Part shown: positions 12,050 to 30,371 of the stretch, in pieces
How positions within the stretch are numbered: the stretch's first letter is position 1
Layout: every line of letters begins with the position of its first letter
NCBI GenBank assembly: GCA_965644315.1
Contig: CBFFRQ010000020.1
Location: 62,001-126,000, forward strand
DNA length: 64,000 nt
From: Caecitellus pseudoparvulus
Taxonomy: Eukaryota; Protista; Bigyra: Bicosoecida
Reading direction: 5' to 3'
Position numbers and translations under genes: made by a program
The notes under the pieces: model-generated
Databases searched by the model: none
What the model was told of the DNA's origin: nothing
Seen by the model: only the letters and a program-made list of their open reading frames with translations

Positions 12050-13540
12050 TCAGGGGTCTCGCGAGGGTGGTTCTGCGGCCGCCCCCCCTGCAACGGCAGG
12101 GACGTGCAGCGTCCACTCGCCGCTGTGCAAGTCATACGAAACATGGCGCATGCCCTTCCCACTGGCCATGCGCCTCAGCTTCTCTGTGTATCCAGCTGCT
12201 TCGCCCTGCTCTTCCTCCGGCAGGGCATCTCGAAGGGCTGACCGGGCCAGGGGGGGTGCAGTCTGCTCCTGCCACGCCGAAGTGGGCGGCAGGCCCGGAC
12301 ACAGCGGCAGCCCCTGCAGCATGACCTGCGTGGCGCAGGGAGCACATCGCCTCAAGAGCTCTTCGTGACGCGCCCATGCCGAGCCCCCGCCGCTCCTGCA
12401 CGCCACGGCTGCTGTCCGGCACTCCACACTGTCAGCCTCCAGCCCCTCATGGTACCCCTCCACGTCAAGCAGGGGATATGCAGGGTCCAGCCAAGGCTCC
12501 GGCCAGCAGTCCCACAGCACGAGCTGCTGTGCGTGGGCCTGCAGCTGCCTGGGCAGGGTCAGCTGCCCGCCCCACAGCTCCACGCGGGCCAGGGACAGAC
12601 CTCGAACATCAAGGGGCGCCAGCCATGTCACGGCACCCTGCCCAGGGAAGACCAGGGTGAAGCCACAGAGCGCTGCGAGGGCCTTGTCAGCCACTTTCGG
12701 CTTCGCACTGCACAGCCACTGCAGGTACTCCGCTGTGGGCAGGGTGAAGGCGCCTGCAGGGGTGTCACACGGGGGCTCGACGCTCTCCACTTCCACGTCC
12801 CCCGTCGCTTCGCTGGGCGGAGGGAGGGGCGCTGTCCCCTCGCAAATCGTGACATTGCGCCGGTGGGGGGCCTTGCCACGGGCAGCTGGGCGGGGAGCCG
12901 CTCGGGACAAGTGCACCACACTCATGTCCTGGACGCCAATGTCCCCGACCGTATTCGAGTCGTCCTCGCCGCTGAGTGAGCCAGTGGGCGCCTCCAGGAC
13001 CCACTGCCGATGCTGTCCTAGAGCTTTCATCTCCTCCAGCTGCTCCTGCCAAGCCTCATCGTCAGCAGGCACCGGAGCGCGCCCTCGACAGTACTGCACC
13101 GTGGCGAGGGCTTGCAAGATGGCGCTGGAGCCAGTGGCTCGCAGGGGCAGCCGGATCCACACCAGCTCCGCGTTGTGCTTCAAGACCACACACATGCGCA
13201 CGAAATGCGGCGTGCATGGCGCATTCAGCTCAATGCCCCGCTGCATGTGCACCACGGGGGCTGGCCGGTCTGCGGAAATCGATGCCATCCTGGCACACAA
13301 CTCTGCTCTGCTGCAGGGCTGCTCCCCAGACGCAGGCGCACCCTGCATCGCCACCTCGGTAGGCGTAGCATATGAATTCTGGGGGTGTGTTTTGAGTGCT
13401 ACATTGAGAACCTGGCTGCAGGGGGGGGGGCGGGGTAGGTGGGCTTGAGTTGCTGCTTGGCACCCCCACACAGACAAACGCTTGCTTGCCTCCGCAAACG
13501 GACAATGACCCAAAACTCCATCTCCCAATTCACGACCCAT
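12050..13540 (-). CDS. Ubiquitin-like domain + Nup98-type autopeptidase (peptidase S59/Nucleoporin2) domain protein lacking the HFS cleavage motif; 5' exon structure uncertain
   Basis: FTLPT..L...FTLVFPGQGAVTWLAPLDVRGLSL...LVLWDCWP...YTEKLRRMASGKGMRHVSYDLHSGEWTLHV follows the Nup98 autopeptidase-domain pattern (F.v.r.g.G.v.f..pvD...l.L; y..kL.......g..f..Y...tG.W.F.V). An upstream LSGEDDSNTVGDIGVQDMSVVHL resembles a ubiquitin-fold C-terminus. Confidence 0.7.
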   Translation of the reverse strand: MGRELGDGVLGHCPFAEASKRLSVWGCQAATQAHLPRPPPCSQVLNVALKTHPQNSYATPTEVAMQGAPASGEQPCSRAELCARMASISADRPAPVVHMQRGIELNAPCTPHFVRMCVVLKHNAELVWIRLPLRATGSSAILQALATVQYCRGRAPVPADDEAWQEQLEEMKALGQHRQWVLEAPTGSLSGEDDSNTVGDIGVQDMSVVHLSRAAPRPAARGKAPHRRNVTICEGTAPLPPPSEATGDVEVESVEPPCDTPAGAFTLPTAEYLQWLCSAKPKVADKALAALCGFTLVFPGQGAVTWLAPLDVRGLSLARVELWGGQLTLPRQLQAHAQQLVLWDCWPEPWLDPAYPLLDVEGYHEGLEADSVECRTAAVACRSGGGSAWARHEELLRRCAPCATQVMLQGLPLCPGLPPTSAWQEQTAPPLARSALRDALPEEEQGEAAGYTEKLRRMASGKGMRHVSYDLHSGEWTLHVPAVAGGAAAEPPSRDP

Positions 13541-19894: not shown

Positions 19895-22800
19895 CTAGGC
19901 GGCGGGTGCCACCAAGCGTCCACGCAGCAGGGCTGCAGCCTGCGCAGACACGGCCTCCCACGGAGCGGCGACATCCCCCAGCCCAGGCAAGCTGGCGCAC
20001 TGGGCCGCCTGGGCGGAGGCCAGGTCTGCCACGGCGCTCTGCAGCACGTCTGGCGACGCGTCCGCCAGCCACGCCCTCGTGCCGCTCACCAGTGCCGCTG
20101 CCATCTGCGCCGCGTCCAGCACAGCGCGCAAGGCTGCGGGGGAGCCCTGGCCCACCACCCGCGGCACTGGCTCTTGAGCGGGCGGTGTCAGACACCCCTG
20201 CACGTCAGCCAGGGCGGCAGCGAGGGCGTCCACCTCGGCGGCCGTGTCGCCGGCTGCCGAGGCACCCCGGACGAGGCAGCGAGCGAGGGAGCGGCACTTG
20301 CCCGCCAACGTCGCCAGCGTTGCGCTGCGCCAGGCTGCCAGGGCCACCTCCGAGTGCCCCCCCGCAGCCATGGCGCGAAGCAGGCTGGGCGCCAGGGGGG
20401 CTGTTGGCTGCAGGTGCCCAGCAGCTGCCTGGGCAGCCTGGGCGTGGGCGGCGGCCCACCAGGACGTGGGGATGGCCAACCCAGCCAAGGGGGTAGGCAG
20501 GGCCGGCAGGTCACCCAGGGGCTGCAGAGTCCACGCAGGCGCCGTGTGGCGGGCCAGGATGTCGTGGGCAACGCGGCTCCAGCCAACGGCCCCGAAGGCT
20601 GCGGCAGGGCTGTCCAGTGCCAGGCCCTGCCCCGGCCCAGCACCCGGCAGACACCCTTGGCCGTCCACAGAGGCAGCAAGCAGCGCCACGGCCACTGCCG
20701 CCTGCCACTGCCCTGCACCCTCCAGCTGGGCCAGGGCCGTGTTTGTGAGCACGGCAGTCTGGCGTGCGCCCAGCACGGGCAGGGGCATGGCCTCTGCCCT
20801 TGCGTAGGCGTATCCCCGCGCAGCGGCCAGCGCCCAGTGAGCCAGCAGGGGCACCGTGGCGTCCAGGGCGTGGGGGGACCATGACTGCGGCGTGAGCAGG
20901 GCGGTCAGGGACGTGTCAGGGAAGGGCACCGACGTCGCGTTCTGGGCGGCGGCGTTGGCGCCTGTCAGCTCAGCCTCTGCGGCCAGCTGCAGGGCGCGGT
21001 ACCATGCGTCGCAAGTGCCCTCCCCGCCACCGCCATGCCAGGGGCGGGGGGACCCTGCCGTCTGCCCATCGGGCGCTGTGGCTGCGGCGGTGAAGAGGTG
21101 CAAGGCGTCCACCAGTGGCGTGGGGGCGCGGGGAGCGTCCCCAAAGCGCAGGAACAGCGCGAAGCCCACCAGCCAGTGCTCAGCTTCCAGCCCCACCACC
21201 TCGTCCTCCAGGCGCCGAGCCACGACAGACAGCAGGCGCAGGACGGGGGCAGGGACAGTCGTGTGGCCGCCCCCTGCTTCGGCGGCGGCCAGCCACGACT
21301 CCACCTGCGCATTCACCAGGTCTGACGCCGTCGCGTCGCCGTGTGCACCGGCCAGGATGAGGCCCAGTCGGGGGTACCCCGCCTCCAGGGCATGCTCCGC
21401 CGCTGTGGCAAGGTCCCCCTGCAGCAGTGCATCCCACGCGCCCTGTAGGGCGCGCGCCGCTTCTGCGTCCTCAGGTGACACGCCTGCACCTGCCAGGGAG
21501 GAAGGTTGCTGCGCCAAGGCTTGAGGCATGGTGCGCTGCAGCCAGGCAAGCAGCGCGTCGCGCCGCCGCATGGTGCCACGCCAGTCTCGGTACACGGGGA
21601 AGCTGTCGCTGATGGCGGCAGAGACGGTGTCGTACGGCAGACGAGGCTGCCCGGTGCCGCCGCTCGTCGCAGGCGTGGCCGCTGCGCCCCACAGAGTGTC
21701 CAGCAAGTCCACCGTGGCGGCTGCATGCTGTGCCCAGGCAGCCGTGTCCGAGCTGCTGGTTTCCGCAGTGCGCAGGAGCTGACTGCGCAGCGCCTGCAGG
21801 CTCTCCGCACCGAAGACGCACCCCAAGGCGCCTGTCGGGCGTGAGCGCAGGGGTGGATCGGACGACAAGTCCTTGGCGAAGACAGGCACAGGGGTCTGCT
21901 GTGGTGCTGCCAGGGAACTGCTCGCCACCACCTGCTGCACGCAGGCGGCGGCAGCGGCGCAGCCCTCCTCCGTGCCGGTGCCCAGAGGCTGCAGCTTGAA
22001 GAGCGCCACACGCTGGCCGCTGGGAACGGCCAGGCGGCCCCCTGGGCCCCAAGCAATGCGCACTCCGGGCCGACCCAAGGGCTGACTGGGGGAGGGCAGC
22101 GGCAACGTGGGGAGGGGGGTGACGACAGGGGGCGGGCGGCTGGCCTCACGCACTCGACCGGCCTCTGCCTCTGCCACGATGGCCTGTAGCATGTCCAGAC
22201 GGCCGGGGGTGTGCGGCACGCCAGCTGGCTGCCTGCCCTTGTCCGGCGTGAAGGCGTGCACCCGGCCGCGCTTGACACCGCTGCCTGGGCGCGCCCAGGT
22301 GGAGAAGTGGGGCACCGTGACGGTCAGCGTGCGTGCGCCGACGTCGTATCGGACCTCTTCCGCGCCGCTTTCCCTGTACAACTCCACGTGTTCCTGGCGG
22401 AACGCTTCGGCAGTGCTGTCGGCGGGGTGCTCCACGCCTTCAAAGACGATGTCTGCCCGCGCGTTGGCGAGGGAGGGGGCGATGTCATGGTCCACGCCAT
22501 GCTCCTCCTCATCCATCAGCAGGCACTGGCCCAGGTCCACTGCAGACAGGTCCACGGCCGTGCGCCACCGCAGCATGACCACGCCGGGCCGCCGAACGGC
22601 AAAGCCCTCCACAGCCTTGATCTCCGCTTTGCTCATGGTCAGCAGGTCGCCCTCGCTGGGGCTGACTAGCACCACGCCGCTGGGTGGAGCAGTGGGCAGC
22701 CAGGGGCGGGTCCTGCGTGCCTCCGCCCACCGCGCCTCCCGCCCAGCACCCACAGCGTTGCCGATGCTGCTGCCGCCAGGCTGCACGCCAAAGGATGCGA

Positions 22801-25800
22801 GGGCCGGGGACGCCGCGCCCGAGCCATCTGAGCCAGGGGATGACGCTGCCCGGCGGCCGCCTCGAGAGCTGCCACGGGGGATGGAGTGAGACCTGGAGGA
22901 GGACCGGCTGGCAGAGCGCTGCCGCCGGACGCTGTGGGAGCCTGGCGTTGAGCGGTGTGGCCGGGAGCGCCGGCGGGACGAGTGCCGGCCGCTGGAGTTG
23001 ACTGGCGTCTCGGACCGGGCAGCTGCCGCCCCCTCCTCGTCGCTGTCTCCCTCCTCTGAGACGATGGACCAGCCAGGGCTCATGGCCACGCGCACATCCG
23101 AGCGGTTCAGGATGCCGTGGCTCTCCAGCGTGTCCTCCTTGCGCGTCAGCTTCATGGTGTCGTGGATGAGCTGGAAGGCGCCCAGCTCCAGCTTCACGTC
23201 AGCGGGGGGGTCCTGCCCCTCCCAGAACTTGTCGTGCAGGCGGAACCAGTGCACGCGCCACGCTTCGGCGACAGCTTCCTTCAGGTCCCCCACTGTGCCG
23301 CTCTCGGGCACCGTTGCGTACACCTTGATGCGGGCGGGGCCACTGGCGCTGTCAGGGCGCCAGGACTCAGACAACAGCTGGGCAGCTGCCGCTTCGTAGC
23401 TGTACAGGCCGTCAGCGTCGGGGTGCCCCATGTGCATCCACTCGTTGCAGACGAGGGCTGGCACAGTGCCACCTTCGCTCACTCGGTTGTAGTCGGACAG
23501 AGCGTCTCGATCTGGCAGGGGCAGCGGTACCCGGGCCTTGTCCCGGGTGTTGGCTGCAGCAGCAAACGAGAATGCCTGCACCAGCACCCCCACCACAATC
23601 TTGCCGCTCTCACCAATAGTCGTGGGAATGGGAGCCGCCAGATCCTCAGCAGCAGATGCGGCACCTGGCGCTGCATCAGGGTTCAGTGGGCCTCTGGCCG
23701 GTGTGGCCCGAGCTGAGCTGAGCAGGCCACCCACGCTGGGTGGAGCAACGTCGGAGGCCGCTCCTTCCAGCAGCTGGGCGCGAGCTGAGCGGTTTGCTGA
23801 TGCAGGCGTCTCCGCAGAGGTCCCTGCGCCCGGCGTCGTGCGGCGGGAGCCGTACCGCCCACGCGCCCTGGAACTGAGGCGAGGCGTGTATACAGTGGCA
23901 GGGGAGGTGGCAGCTCCCACTGTGGCAGCCGCCACTGCCTCCCACCCCTCCTCCTCGCGCTGTGCCGCCTTGGCCCCGCCGCCGCTGCCCCCGCCACCGG
24001 CAGAGTCTGCCTCTGCCAGGCGTGTGGCCAGAGCATCGGCACTTTCCTTGGCGTGTGGCAGGCGCATGTACGAGTGAACGTACGCCTCGGCATCCAGGCT
24101 GCCATATGGGTCTGTCTGCCCGACCTGCAGCATAACTGTGCGGCTCTGCGCGCCGCCTGCGAGGCCAGCTCCGCCGCCGCCCAGCAGCCCGCCGCCGCCG
24201 CCACCGCCCAGCAGCCCGCCACCACCGCCACCGCCCAGCAAGCCGCCAGATGTGCCACCACCCAACAGGCCACCACCACCACCACCACCCAGCAGGCCGC
24301 CACCCCCACCACCACCCAGCAGGCCGCCCGTCCTGGCCCCGCCGCCCAATAGACCACCCCCACCGCCGCCACCCAGCAAGCCGCCGGACGCAGCGCCACC
24401 GCCCAACAGGCCACCGCCGCCACCGCCACCAAGCAGACCACCAGATGTTGCACCACCACCCCCAAGCAAGCCACCCCCGCCGCCACCTCCAAGCAGGCCA
24501 CCCCCCACGCCCGTCGTGAGGCCGCCAGACACGCCGCCACCGAGTAAGCCGCCTGACGTAGCACCGCCACCGAGCAGACCACCACCCCCTCCGCCAAGCA
24601 AGCCTCCGGTCGCTTGCTGCTGCTGCCCCATCAGCCCACCTCCGCCGCCCAGCAAACCACCGGATGTGCCGCCACCCATAAGTCCACCAGATACACCTCC
24701 TCCCAGCAAGCCCCCTGCCGCTTGCTGCTGTTGCCCCATTAGTCCGCCTCCGCCGCCCAGCAAACCACCGGATGTGCCGCCACCCATGAGTCCACCAGAT
24801 ACACCCCCCCCCATCAAGCCGCCACCGCCGCCCATCAGGCCACCTGTGGCTTGTTGTCCTCCCATGAGACCACCGCCGCCGCCCATCAGCCCGCCGCCTC
24901 CTCCCATCAGGCCGCCAGACACGCCGACACCTTGCTGTGCCACGCCGCCGGCTGGCTGTTGCTGCCGCACAAGCGACAGCGGGAATGCCGTGGTGCCTCC
25001 ACGGTTCTGGGCCATGTAGTCTTCCAGGCGGAGCTCCACGTCAGTGCGGTTGTCCAGGCCTGGCATGGCAGAGATGCTCATGTAGTGGGCTCCAGAGGGC
25101 GCCTGCCGTCCGTTCCGGGTGGTAATTTGGGCGGTGGGGGCCCACGTCACGCCAATGGTTCCCAGGCCGGCTCCGGCAGCGCCTTGCTGTTGGCCCATTA
25201 AGCCACCCGTGGCTTGCTGCCCACCCATCAGGCCACCGCCGCCCATCAAGCCGGTGGAGGTCGCTTGCTGTCCCATCAGCCCGCCTCCGCCGCCCATGAG
25301 CCCACCCGTGGCTTGCTGCCCGCCCATGAGCCCGCCGCCGCCCATCAGGCCAGTGGAGGCCGCCTGCTGCCCCATCAACCCGCCGCCCATCAAGCCACCC
25401 GTAGCTTGCTGCCCACCCATCAGGCCACCGCCGCCCATCAAGCCAGTCGAAGCAGCCTGCTGCCCCATCAGCCCGCCTCCGCCGCCCATGAGCCCACCCG
25501 TGGCTTGCTGCCCGCCCATGAGCCCGCCACCACCGCCCATGAGCCCGCCACCACCGCCCATGAGCCCGCCACCACCGCCCATAAGCCCACCTGTGGCTTG
25601 CTGCCCGCCCATGAGCCCGCCACCACCGCCCATCAAGCCGCCACCGCCGCCCATCAGGCCGCCTGTGGCTTGCTGCCCTCCCATGAGACCACCGCCGCCA
25701 CCCAGGGTGGCAGTTTGACGCTGCAAACCAGGTGCAGTGGGCATGCCTCCCAAGCCTGCGAAAAAAACGCCGATTGCCGTCATGGTTGGCCAGTGAGCTG

Positions 25801-26047
25801 GTGCCGCATGCGGCGCAAACTCACCTCCGCTTCCCAACAAGCCACCAGAGCGCTGCTGCGGAAAAGATGGGGGTGGTGGGAGTGAATGTGGTCGTGCTTT
25901 GGCCTAAGCGAGAGATTGCTCTCCCTGCATGGCAGTGGGCGTACCTGCTGCTGACCCATCAGACCACCTCCTGCGGAAAACGAACGGGTGCTTTGCCGCT
26001 GGCGCAGGAGCATGTACGCGCGGAGGGCGAGGCTCACCAGCGAGCAT
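19895..26047 (-). CDS. NUP98: Nup98-Nup96 precursor (about 1975 aa) with GLMG/GLLG repeats in place of GLFG; exons 26047-26038, 25970-25945, 25855-25825, 25755-19895
   Basis: Gly-rich repeat domain interrupted by a GLEBS motif (HYMSISAMPGLDNRTDVELRLEDY, 25087-25016), a PYG motif, an autopeptidase domain ending in H-F/S (22309-22301), then Nup96 motifs (VRIAWGPGGRL, AGYPRLGLIL, AQLEGAGQW). Three GT-AG introns (67, 89, 69 nt) give an in-frame start MLAGGGLMGQQQ. Confidence 0.92.
24150..25710 (-). repeat. Coding tandem repeat array (GGLMG/GGLLG units with GQQAT, QQAAST, GGTS and GGVS spacers) in NUP98
   Basis: By hand count there are about 30 GLMG and about 18 GLLG in this span, in near-identical nucleotide blocks such as + strand cccatgagcccgccaccaccg and gtggcttgctgcccgcccat. 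Confidence 0.95.
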
Positions 26048-26397
26048 GGTTGTAACCTTGTACAGAACAGCAGATCAAAGCACAGGCAGAGCCTCGCACC
26101 GAGCAATGCGCGGAGTTCGAGCCTGTAGCTGGCTGGCTCCTGCTGCAGTTGCACGCGGTTTGTTGGCGTTCGCAACACCAGTTGCCCTGCCTCAGTCAGG
26201 GCCGAGTTGAGACGAGCCTAAACCCTTCCTCGCACAAGGAGAGGACAGGGTAGCTCATGTTGTGAGCAGTTGGGTTTTACTTTTTTCCCCTTGTCGCTTG
26301 CCGCCTGCTTCTGCGTGCCGCTGCAGCAGCATTGCTCTCTGGTGCAGGTCTGACAAAGCACAGCACCCAGAAAGCAGAGTGATTGGAAGGCGTTCAT

Positions 26398-28620: not shown

Positions 28621-30260
28621 TTATTCTGCGGGGACGCACTCTTTGAGACTCGTCACAGGCAGTGCTTGCGTGGTCGGCAAAGCAGCACCGGTGCCAGAGG
28701 GCACTGTTGGCATGAGGCCTGCTTCGAATGCAGGCCGTGGGGGAGCTGCTGGACTTGGCACTTCACTTGGTGCGCTCTCGTCGTCCCTGATGGCTTGGTC
28801 CAGCTCTGCCAGCGCTGCCTCCTCATCCAGCTCCGCCCCTGGTAGCGGCGCGGCAACAACCGCGAGGGACTCCTCAGCCACCTCCACCGCATCCGCCACT
28901 GCCTCCATGGCGCGGCGAACATCCTCTGGGGTGGTCTGTGCGTTGGCGAGCGCCAGCGCCGTGGTAGCACTGCCCAGCGAAGCAACCACTTCCCCTGTCA
29001 ACCGGGAGGCGTCCACTTGCCCCAACACCAAGCCGAGCTTGCCGGCCAGGCTCGTCGCGTGCGTTGCAGTGGCCTCTGCCGCAGCAGCTGCACGCAGACA
29101 GGCCGACGCCTCACTGCGGTGGCCCTGTGAGAGTGCCTGCCTGGCGGACAGCCTTGAGCGGTGGGCATCGCGGCGCCGCTGAGACGCACGCAGCAGCGCC
29201 TTGTGGAGTGTGACGGAGGCCTTCACCCTCCCCGCCGCTGCTTGTGATGCGAGGGGTTGGTCGTCATGGGGGGGTGGCAGCAGCGCAGGGCCCGCCTCGC
29301 CGACGTCGTGCACCTCTGCACGCCCCGACGCCACGACGTCGTGCACGGCCAGAAGCAGGCAGGCCGGCAATGCTGCCTGCGATGAGGGATGCAACACAGA
29401 AGAAGCCTGGGCGGTGGCAGCTGTCCATTCCTGTGCCGCCTGTGGCAGTGCGGCGGCAGGCACGTCAGGCCCGGAAAACGCTCCCAACACGGGAGACAGC
29501 GTGCAGCCTGGCAAGCAGGGTAGCGAGGGCAAGTGGTCGCCGGCAGTCACAGCGGATCCGTCCACAGCACGGCAATCCAGGAACAGCAGGGCCCACCCCG
29601 TGCCTGCCGCTGCGTCGACGGCTTTCACGATGGCTGCCTGCAACGCAGCGTGGGCTTCCGGCTGCACCCACACATCTCGCGTGGTGGGGGGTGGGGGCGG
29701 GCGTGGTGGGCTCAGAACTGCTGCAGCACCAAAGACAAGCGCGGATGCGGCACTCCATACGGTGGACGCCACCCATTCACCCGTGGAGAGCGTGGCTGGG
29801 GAAGGACTGCGTGCCCAAGTGTGCACTGTACCTGCCCGCCACGGCACGAAGGCTGCCTTGTCGTCTGCAGCTTGAACTCGCAAGGCCCGCGCACAGCCCA
29901 ATGCAAGCGGTCCGACGTTGAATACTGGGTGGTGCAGGTATTGGAGGATGTCCTCCGGGCGGCAGGCGTTGGCAGGGGTCAGGCCAGCCTGCGCAGCGTG
30001 GCGCAGCGCTGTTGTCCAGAACTGCACAGCTCCGCCGTCCAGACGGAGGTCTTCCTCGCTCTCTCCCTCCAAGTCGCTGAGCACAAATCTCAGTCGCTGT
30101 TCGTGTTTCCACCAAGCGTCCAGGCGCGTGCACGTGACCTGGCTGCAGAGGGGGCACGGGGGCTCGTCGAAACTCCCTTGAAACGCCATGTCACTGCCCC
30201 TTGCCTGTCGCCACTGAGCAAAGCACAGGATCTGAACACACAAACTTGGGACCACTTCAT
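28621..30260 (-). CDS. CHMP7: CHMP7/Chm7-like ESCRT-II/III hybrid protein with a C-terminal Snf7 domain; 5' exon tentative (30260-30205, GC-AG intron, exon 2 from 30142)
   Basis: C-terminal Snf7 pattern (A..CL.....A...........L..VL.QVD.......VV.SL..A..AL.......PEDV...M......DEE....EL). The long N-terminal extension has RLRFVLSDL..FW, as in CHMP7-type proteins. Confidence 0.6.
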
Positions 30261-30371
30261 GCTGTGTAGAGGGCATGGAGGTGCCGGTTGGTGGCGACTG
30301 GATTGACCCGCTGCGCCGAATGCCATCTGTGCCACGTCACGGAGCGACATGCAAGTGTCCCGTGCATGCAG

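Follow-up and report, generated by a model that had tools for sequence, protein, structure and literature searches.

A Nup98-96 with GLMG and GLLG motifs in place of FG repeats, and an apparent change of nuclear pore chemistry, in Caecitellus pseudoparvulus

FG repeats count as a conserved feature of the nuclear pore, and phenylalanine is held to be critical both for the cohesion of the repeats and for their docking in receptor clefts (PMC13242641). A survey of 666 Nup98 domains gives a motif period of about 12.5 residues, with 43 ± 6 motifs in a length of 549 ± 87 residues (PMC4283134). The only natural exception to GLFG that we found in the literature searched is the NIFN repeat of the Tetrahymena micronuclear Nup98 (PMC8421043, PMC5450191), which retains Phe but not Gly, occurs alongside GLFG paralogues and is not pore-wide. 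Artificial exceptions have been built from Tetrahymena MacNup98A as GLLG and GLLG//L variants: with a 12-residue period, the change from GLFG to GLLG leaves the engineered domain unable to phase-separate, phase separation returns when each repeat gains one Leu, and shorter spacers raise cohesion (Ng 2023, PMC9918544). The Leu-restored GLLG phase still sieves, and excludes native importin-beta, transportin and Xpo1 (PMC9918544).

Here we describe a natural departure from GLFG in the Nup98-96 of Caecitellus pseudoparvulus, an organism whose pore filter and transport receptors appear, from their sequences, to run on a different chemistry, with Leu and Met for Phe. Natural FG-free nucleoporins were not found in the literature searched, which left most subscription papers outside its coverage; within the same limits, GLLG together with Nup98 returned engineered variants only, GLMG together with nucleoporin returned nothing, and searches of the main text and supplement of PMC9918544 gave no occurrence of GLMG. 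An earlier sequence-only reading of this DNA knew of no described natural GLMG Nup98, and within this coverage none was found. An FG-free Nup98 would escape any survey that picks its genes by FG content.

The Nup98-96 gene and its repeat domain

The gene is encoded by the minus strand at 26047-19895 of the window, by which we mean the whole 64-kb stretch of C. pseudoparvulus DNA that was analysed. Its open frame begins at 25840 and ends with the stop at 19895, and three short GT-AG introns of consistent phase tie the ATG at 26047 to this frame, in a model built from splice signals and frame only. As an RNA check, reads of four runs over 22000-26300 gave short, patchy contigs with no splice joints and with exons 1-3 uncovered, and none of the alternative starts in the 5′ region gives FG repeats. 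The features are as follows.

26038..26047, minus: exon 1, MLA and the first base of G (ATG, GTGAG donor, frame continuity)
26037-25971, minus: intron 1, 67 nt, GT-AG, T-rich tract then CAG
25945..25970, minus: exon 2, one GLMG (T-rich CAG acceptor, GTACG donor, phase 1 to 0)
25944-25856, minus: intron 2, 89 nt, GT-AG, T-rich tract then CAG
25825..25855, minus: exon 3, one GLLG (tandem CAGCAG acceptor, in frame either way)
25824-25756, minus: intron 3, 69 nt, GT-AG, T-rich tract then CAG
19895..25755, minus: exon 4, remaining Nup98-Nup96 frame up to the stop (open frame)
25193..25690, minus: repeat block 1, 21 GLMG, median period 7, uncharged, 83 hydrophobic carbons per 100 residues
25004..25117, minus: GLEBS (Rae1-binding) motif, divergent (PF21240 E 0.022, under the cut-off)
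24983..24985, minus: sole Phe of the N-terminal domain, with Pro and not Gly after it
24179..24913, minus: repeat block 2, 9 GLMG grading into 18 GLLG, median period 9, 90 carbons per 100 residues
24101..24109, minus: PYG motif at the end of the repeat domain, common to the metagenomic relative described below
22295..22666, minus: autoproteolytic domain (peptidase S59), HF/S site at 22309-22301 (PF04096 35.4 bits, cut-off 28.4)
20678..21433, minus: Nup96 domain (PF12110 52.3 bits, cut-off 25; same frame, downstream)
12050..13540, minus: degenerate second autoproteolytic-domain gene (PF04096 E 8e-5, below the cut-off)

The sequence-only reading had named this gene Nup98-96, an identity that we confirm. 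Both Pfam domains, PF04096 and PF12110, score above their cut-offs, the HFS of the cleavage site stands at 22309, and the order of repeats, GLEBS, repeats, autoprotease and Nup96 is that of the canonical protein. The GLEBS match is weak but specific: it sits inside the repeat domain with the ELRLEDY core in common, and its top three PDB matches are Nup98 GLEBS peptides. Profile searches of the genome returned one match each for the autoprotease, the GLEBS and Nup96, every one in this gene; by these searches no second full-length Nup98-96 was found in the genome. By its domains it is a true orthologue, yet it does not carry the many FG dipeptides by which an FG nucleoporin is recognised. Between the repeats and the autoprotease there is also a weak ubiquitin-like match (E 0.008; window ~23080-23340, minus), in a stretch well conserved in the metagenomic relative. 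A Snf7-domain (CHMP7-like) gene lies nearby at 28621-30276 (minus).

In the spliced model the N-terminal domain counts 571 residues to the PYG and holds 50 motifs (31 GLMG and 19 GLLG), one Phe and no FG, exactly as had been counted by hand; exon 4 up to the PYG contributes 30 GLMG, 18 GLLG and the Phe, again with no FG, and the first 1000 residues of the protein have no FG dipeptide. The repeat blocks are of low complexity, with regular hydrophobic motifs at a period of 7-9, 0-0.4% charged residues and 47-60% Gly. By comparison, 8 GLMG or GLLG occur in the 115,396 six-frame codons of the remaining window. At the DNA level the 48 motifs of exon 4 take 31 different forms, with all six Leu codons used at position 2, which indicates that the constraint acts on the protein and not on a DNA microsatellite. 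Length (571 against 549 ± 87 residues), motif number (about 50 against 43 ± 6), the uncharged G/Q/T/A/S spacers and the hydrophobic density all resemble those of canonical Nup98 (PMC4283134), from which the domain differs in having no FG, Met or Leu as third motif residue, a period of 7-9 instead of 12.5, far more Gly and hardly any Asn or Pro.

In 950 codons, the gene of a second isolate differs by 28 synonymous and 4 non-synonymous changes, a ratio that indicates purifying selection, and the locus is present in many marine sequencing runs. With its frame intact, a pseudogene was rejected. The degenerate gene at 12050-13540, about 6 kb from NUP98, has no FG, LLG or LMG and no HF/S site, and was likewise rejected as a canonical back-up Nup98 within the window; the second, GLFG-type Nup98 that might have undone the reading was not found in the assembly. 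As the genome domain search missed this degenerate gene, such searches are not exhaustive here. It was not seen in the recovered contigs of the relative, and an Atlas search with the Nup98 repeat domain gave no matches.

The switch in a relative and across the central channel

Word-based and HMMER searches for relatives found only the same species and one metagenomic relative (P0002/L049). There, the Nup98-96 is 42% identical after the repeats and adjoins the same CCT3 gene, itself 80% identical, and the recovered part of its repeat domain has 13 GLLG, no FG and no GLMG. More distant Nup98 matches, one cluster of which includes a diatom, carry ordinary FG where N-terminal parts are present. 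Judged from these orthologues, the LG switch is old enough to be common to this distant metagenomic relative.

The three partners of Nup98 in the central channel show the same replacement, in answer to a check that the sequence-only reading had suggested. Nup62 (locus L012), recognised by an Nsp1_C coiled coil of 45.8 bits (cut-off 24.1), has 15 SLLG and 6 GLLG with one N-terminal SLFG. The Nup54 candidate (L011), whose PF13874 match from one exon reaches 26.7 bits against a cut-off of 30.5 (E 6e-6), has 19 GLLG and no FG repeats. The Nup58 candidate (L010) has no Pfam match; its best Atlas match is p58/p45 at 0.89, with 10 of the 10 top matches in the same family or clan, and 10 and 11 motifs flank its coiled coil, with no FG repeats. 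The coiled-coil anchors, and the Nup58 repeats on either side of the coiled coil, are as in the canonical Nup62-Nup54-Nup58 (Nsp1-Nup57-Nup49) trimer, which differs in carrying FxFG and GLFG where SLLG and GLLG stand here.

Next we took a census of the assembly through two complete listings, one of the paired G[LF][LF]G sites (88) and one of the triplets of FG with a small residue (94). The paired sites are GLLG arrays only, with no GLFG array in the assembly, and no nucleoporin-like array was present among the closely spaced FG triplets that were judged. The FG arrays that were opened and rejected as nucleoporins belong to Sec31, ArfGAP-like, giant ligase-like and ECM29-like proteins or are wrong-strand reads; those at C67, C68 and C131 and the patch at C42 are pattern matches only. 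The only FG-rich nucleoporin-like protein found is a lamin-tail-domain protein (L035:4488-8813, minus; C68) with alternating SLLG and SLFG, about 10 of the latter, which is probably a basket component. The census is incomplete, as domain searches here miss divergent genes; those for Gle1, the Nup214 propeller and PF15967 were blank or weak, and are unreliable as negatives. Nup93, Nup85, a RanBP1 domain and eight karyopherin genes are present in the genome. Nup85 (L013:3-3170, plus, with L037:6677-9001), a scaffold nucleoporin, ends in a tail of 10 GLLG.

Collectively, the motif content indicates that the FG-to-LG switch is pore-wide, with all four central-channel nucleoporins (Nup54 and Nup58 as candidates) lacking FG repeats. 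A phenylalanine-free pore, as had been proposed, overstates the case, since the basket-like protein keeps about 10 SLFG. By the same counts the barrier is mostly Leu-based, with Met confined to the N-terminal portion of Nup98 and a single further array. The suggestion that Met stickers could make the barrier oxidation-sensitive finds no support so far, Met being limited and the recovered domain of the relative having GLLG only.

Similar motifs occur elsewhere. An ankyrin-repeat protein (L009:1410-5123, plus) has 16 GLLG in its C-terminal part and is a possible new pore component, and importin-alpha (L014:4005-5666, minus) has a Gly/Gln tail with GLLG and GLMG. A 17-motif GLMG array (G000:C43:662576-662970, minus) and an eightfold array of SLLG pairs (G000:C48:19416-20137, plus) are pattern matches only, and for the looser patterns LxLG and xLLG the signal was swamped by telomere and chance matches. 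FG motifs outside the pore set comprise three GLFG in the ECM29-like HEAT protein (L032) and FG-rich patches in the giant ligase-like protein (L017/L018); DPF and PFG motifs are kept in non-pore proteins.

Motif density and transport receptors

The spacing of the motifs bears on whether Leu and Met could do the work of Phe. By the measure of PMC9918544, which counts hydrophobic side-chain carbons per 100 residues, the values for natural Nup98 domains are 86-111; a plain GLLG at period 12, the spacing of the engineered domain that failed to phase-separate, would by our own arithmetic have 67. The Nup98 domain here has 83-90 and that of the relative 93; the Nup54 candidate has 85, the Nup58 candidate 78-81 and Nup62 only 54. 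Counting Met as three carbons, this is a crude proxy, Met being a weak sticker and half of the residues Gly. The period of 7-9, against about 12.5 in natural Nup98, brings the density back to about the natural range, in keeping with the dense Met/Leu stickers that had been proposed. The simplest reading of this proxy is that weaker stickers are compensated by motif density. The engineered variants share the GLLG motif and this principle of compensation, which there takes the form of extra spacer Leu and here that of shorter spacers.

Next we examined the receptors, for which co-evolved pockets had been predicted. Importin-beta, which was also recovered as an intron-free contig, is extremely divergent: it scores 129 bits against the human protein, compared with 606 bits for the Tribonema orthologue. 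Of the residues of the N-terminal FG pocket (taken, with the FG-stacking Tyr255, from PMC2172684), C. pseudoparvulus and the metagenomic relative both have Tyr255 changed to His or Ser, Phe217 to Ile and Glu214 to Gln, while Leu174 is kept and Ile178 is Val, the same as in Tribonema. Phe217 is also changed in Tribonema (to Met), which leaves the changes at Tyr255 and Glu214 as the only ones specific to the lineage when set against four outgroups. The protein has diverged over its whole length and not just in the pocket. The controls CCT3 and the HEAT protein TBCD are conserved as normal, so that the divergence is not simply that of a fast proteome, although two genes make a small control set. 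CRM1 shows moderate acceleration (37-41% against 48-50% among outgroups) and keeps both pocket residues tested, Tyr105 and Trp880, which may fit residual FG docking at the periphery. The predicted co-evolution is accordingly supported for importin-beta, and not for the two CRM1 pocket residues. The karyopherin set otherwise looks normal. Genome searches with NTF2-family and TAP_C profiles gave no match; these are weak negatives, and loss of such FG-dependent carriers, if true, would suit a barrier of LG motifs. From sequence, adaptation and relaxed constraint are indistinguishable as sources of the importin-beta divergence.

Explanations for the FG-free channel

The best explanation of these data is that the gene is the functional Nup98-96 of its lineage and that its repeat domain is a Nup98 barrier domain with aliphatic stickers. 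We propose that the Nup62, Nup54 and Nup58 trimer was rewritten likewise, and that the weaker Leu/Met motifs would be offset by shorter, Gly-rich, uncharged spacers. The Nup98 domain could then condense into a cohesive sieve excluding inert proteins, the receptors, importin-beta foremost, would have changed their outer surfaces to become soluble in a non-aromatic phase, and the remaining peripheral FG sites may dock CRM1. The identity of the gene, the switch in four channel nucleoporins, its presence in the relative, purifying selection, spacer shortening and importin-beta divergence are observed; from them we infer phase separation, barrier function and receptor adaptation as a cause and not a by-product. 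Taken as a whole, this account of a functional Nup98-96, a cohesive Leu/Met channel barrier and receptors adapted to it is, in our judgement, probably correct. That the central barrier was rebuilt from Leu/Met and the import receptors re-tuned into a natural orthogonal pair, incompatible with FG-type receptors, we put forward more tentatively, at a little below even chances.

The switch could also be real and yet have left the Leu/Met domains as a brush with little or no cohesion. Such a barrier would be leakier and more entropic, the demands on receptor binding would be relaxed, and the divergence of importin-beta would be a sign of lost constraint and not of adaptation. Engineered GLLG at a 12-residue period does not phase-separate (PMC9918544), and the high Gly content, the low hydrophobicity of Nup62, receptors diverged along their whole length and, as a weak negative, the missing NTF2 match all agree with such a brush. 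We nevertheless regard it as unlikely: spacer shortening gives about natural density in both species (83-93), the Nup98 motifs show strict uniformity and no charge, their number is normal (50 against a median of 43, PMC4283134), and GLLG tails have been gained on Nup85 and other proteins. Considerably less probable is that an undetected FG-rich nucleoporin, unassembled, split by introns or with long spacers, forms the true barrier while the LG domains are structural filler. The SLFG motifs of the lamin-tail protein and the kept CRM1 pocket residues would fit, as would searches that miss divergent genes and arrays (C67, C68, C131, the C42 patch) known as pattern matches only; the four canonical central-channel nucleoporins are, however, accounted for, all without FG repeats, and every FG array opened proved to be something else.

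That the switch is a by-product of GC pressure or of a general loss of Phe, or that Phe is hidden by recoding or RNA editing, is largely refuted and was rejected as highly improbable. The genome is ~64% GC and TTC to CTC is one transition, but the third-position codons are ATG in 30 of 48 motifs and CTG or TTG in 12 of 48, from which C-to-U editing cannot give Phe; Phe makes up 3.7-4.7% of the karyopherins and persists in the DPF and PFG of non-pore proteins, and is read as such at conserved sites, e.g. HFS. Repeat arrays are hard to assemble and no RNA joint was seen, yet the same motifs recur in independent assemblies (L016, L047, L049), and the intact frame, the excess of synonymous differences and the presence in marine runs argue against decay, so that an assembly artefact or pseudogene has the smallest probability of all.

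An FG-free channel breaks a rule thought general. A GLLG-type phase in vitro shuts out importin-beta, transportin and Xpo1, an exclusion that any cell with a channel of this kind must have overcome. In this organism one can thus ask, in a natural setting, whether the barrier owes its properties to aromatic contacts or to hydrophobic density alone, and whether receptors recognise FG specifically or merely dissolve in the phase; domain and receptor swaps with human or yeast can address both questions.

As for the organism itself, a CRM1 tree (quick method, long branches) gives no placement. The assembly of Symbiodinium sp. KB8 (GCA_905221625.1) holds near-identical genes (L016; P0001, P0019, P0020, P0073), and these C. 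pseudoparvulus-like genes are, to judge from the genes themselves, apparently contamination. The telomeric repeat is TTAGGG (G000:C5 and others), and the 18S rRNA gene is short, at 1697 nt.
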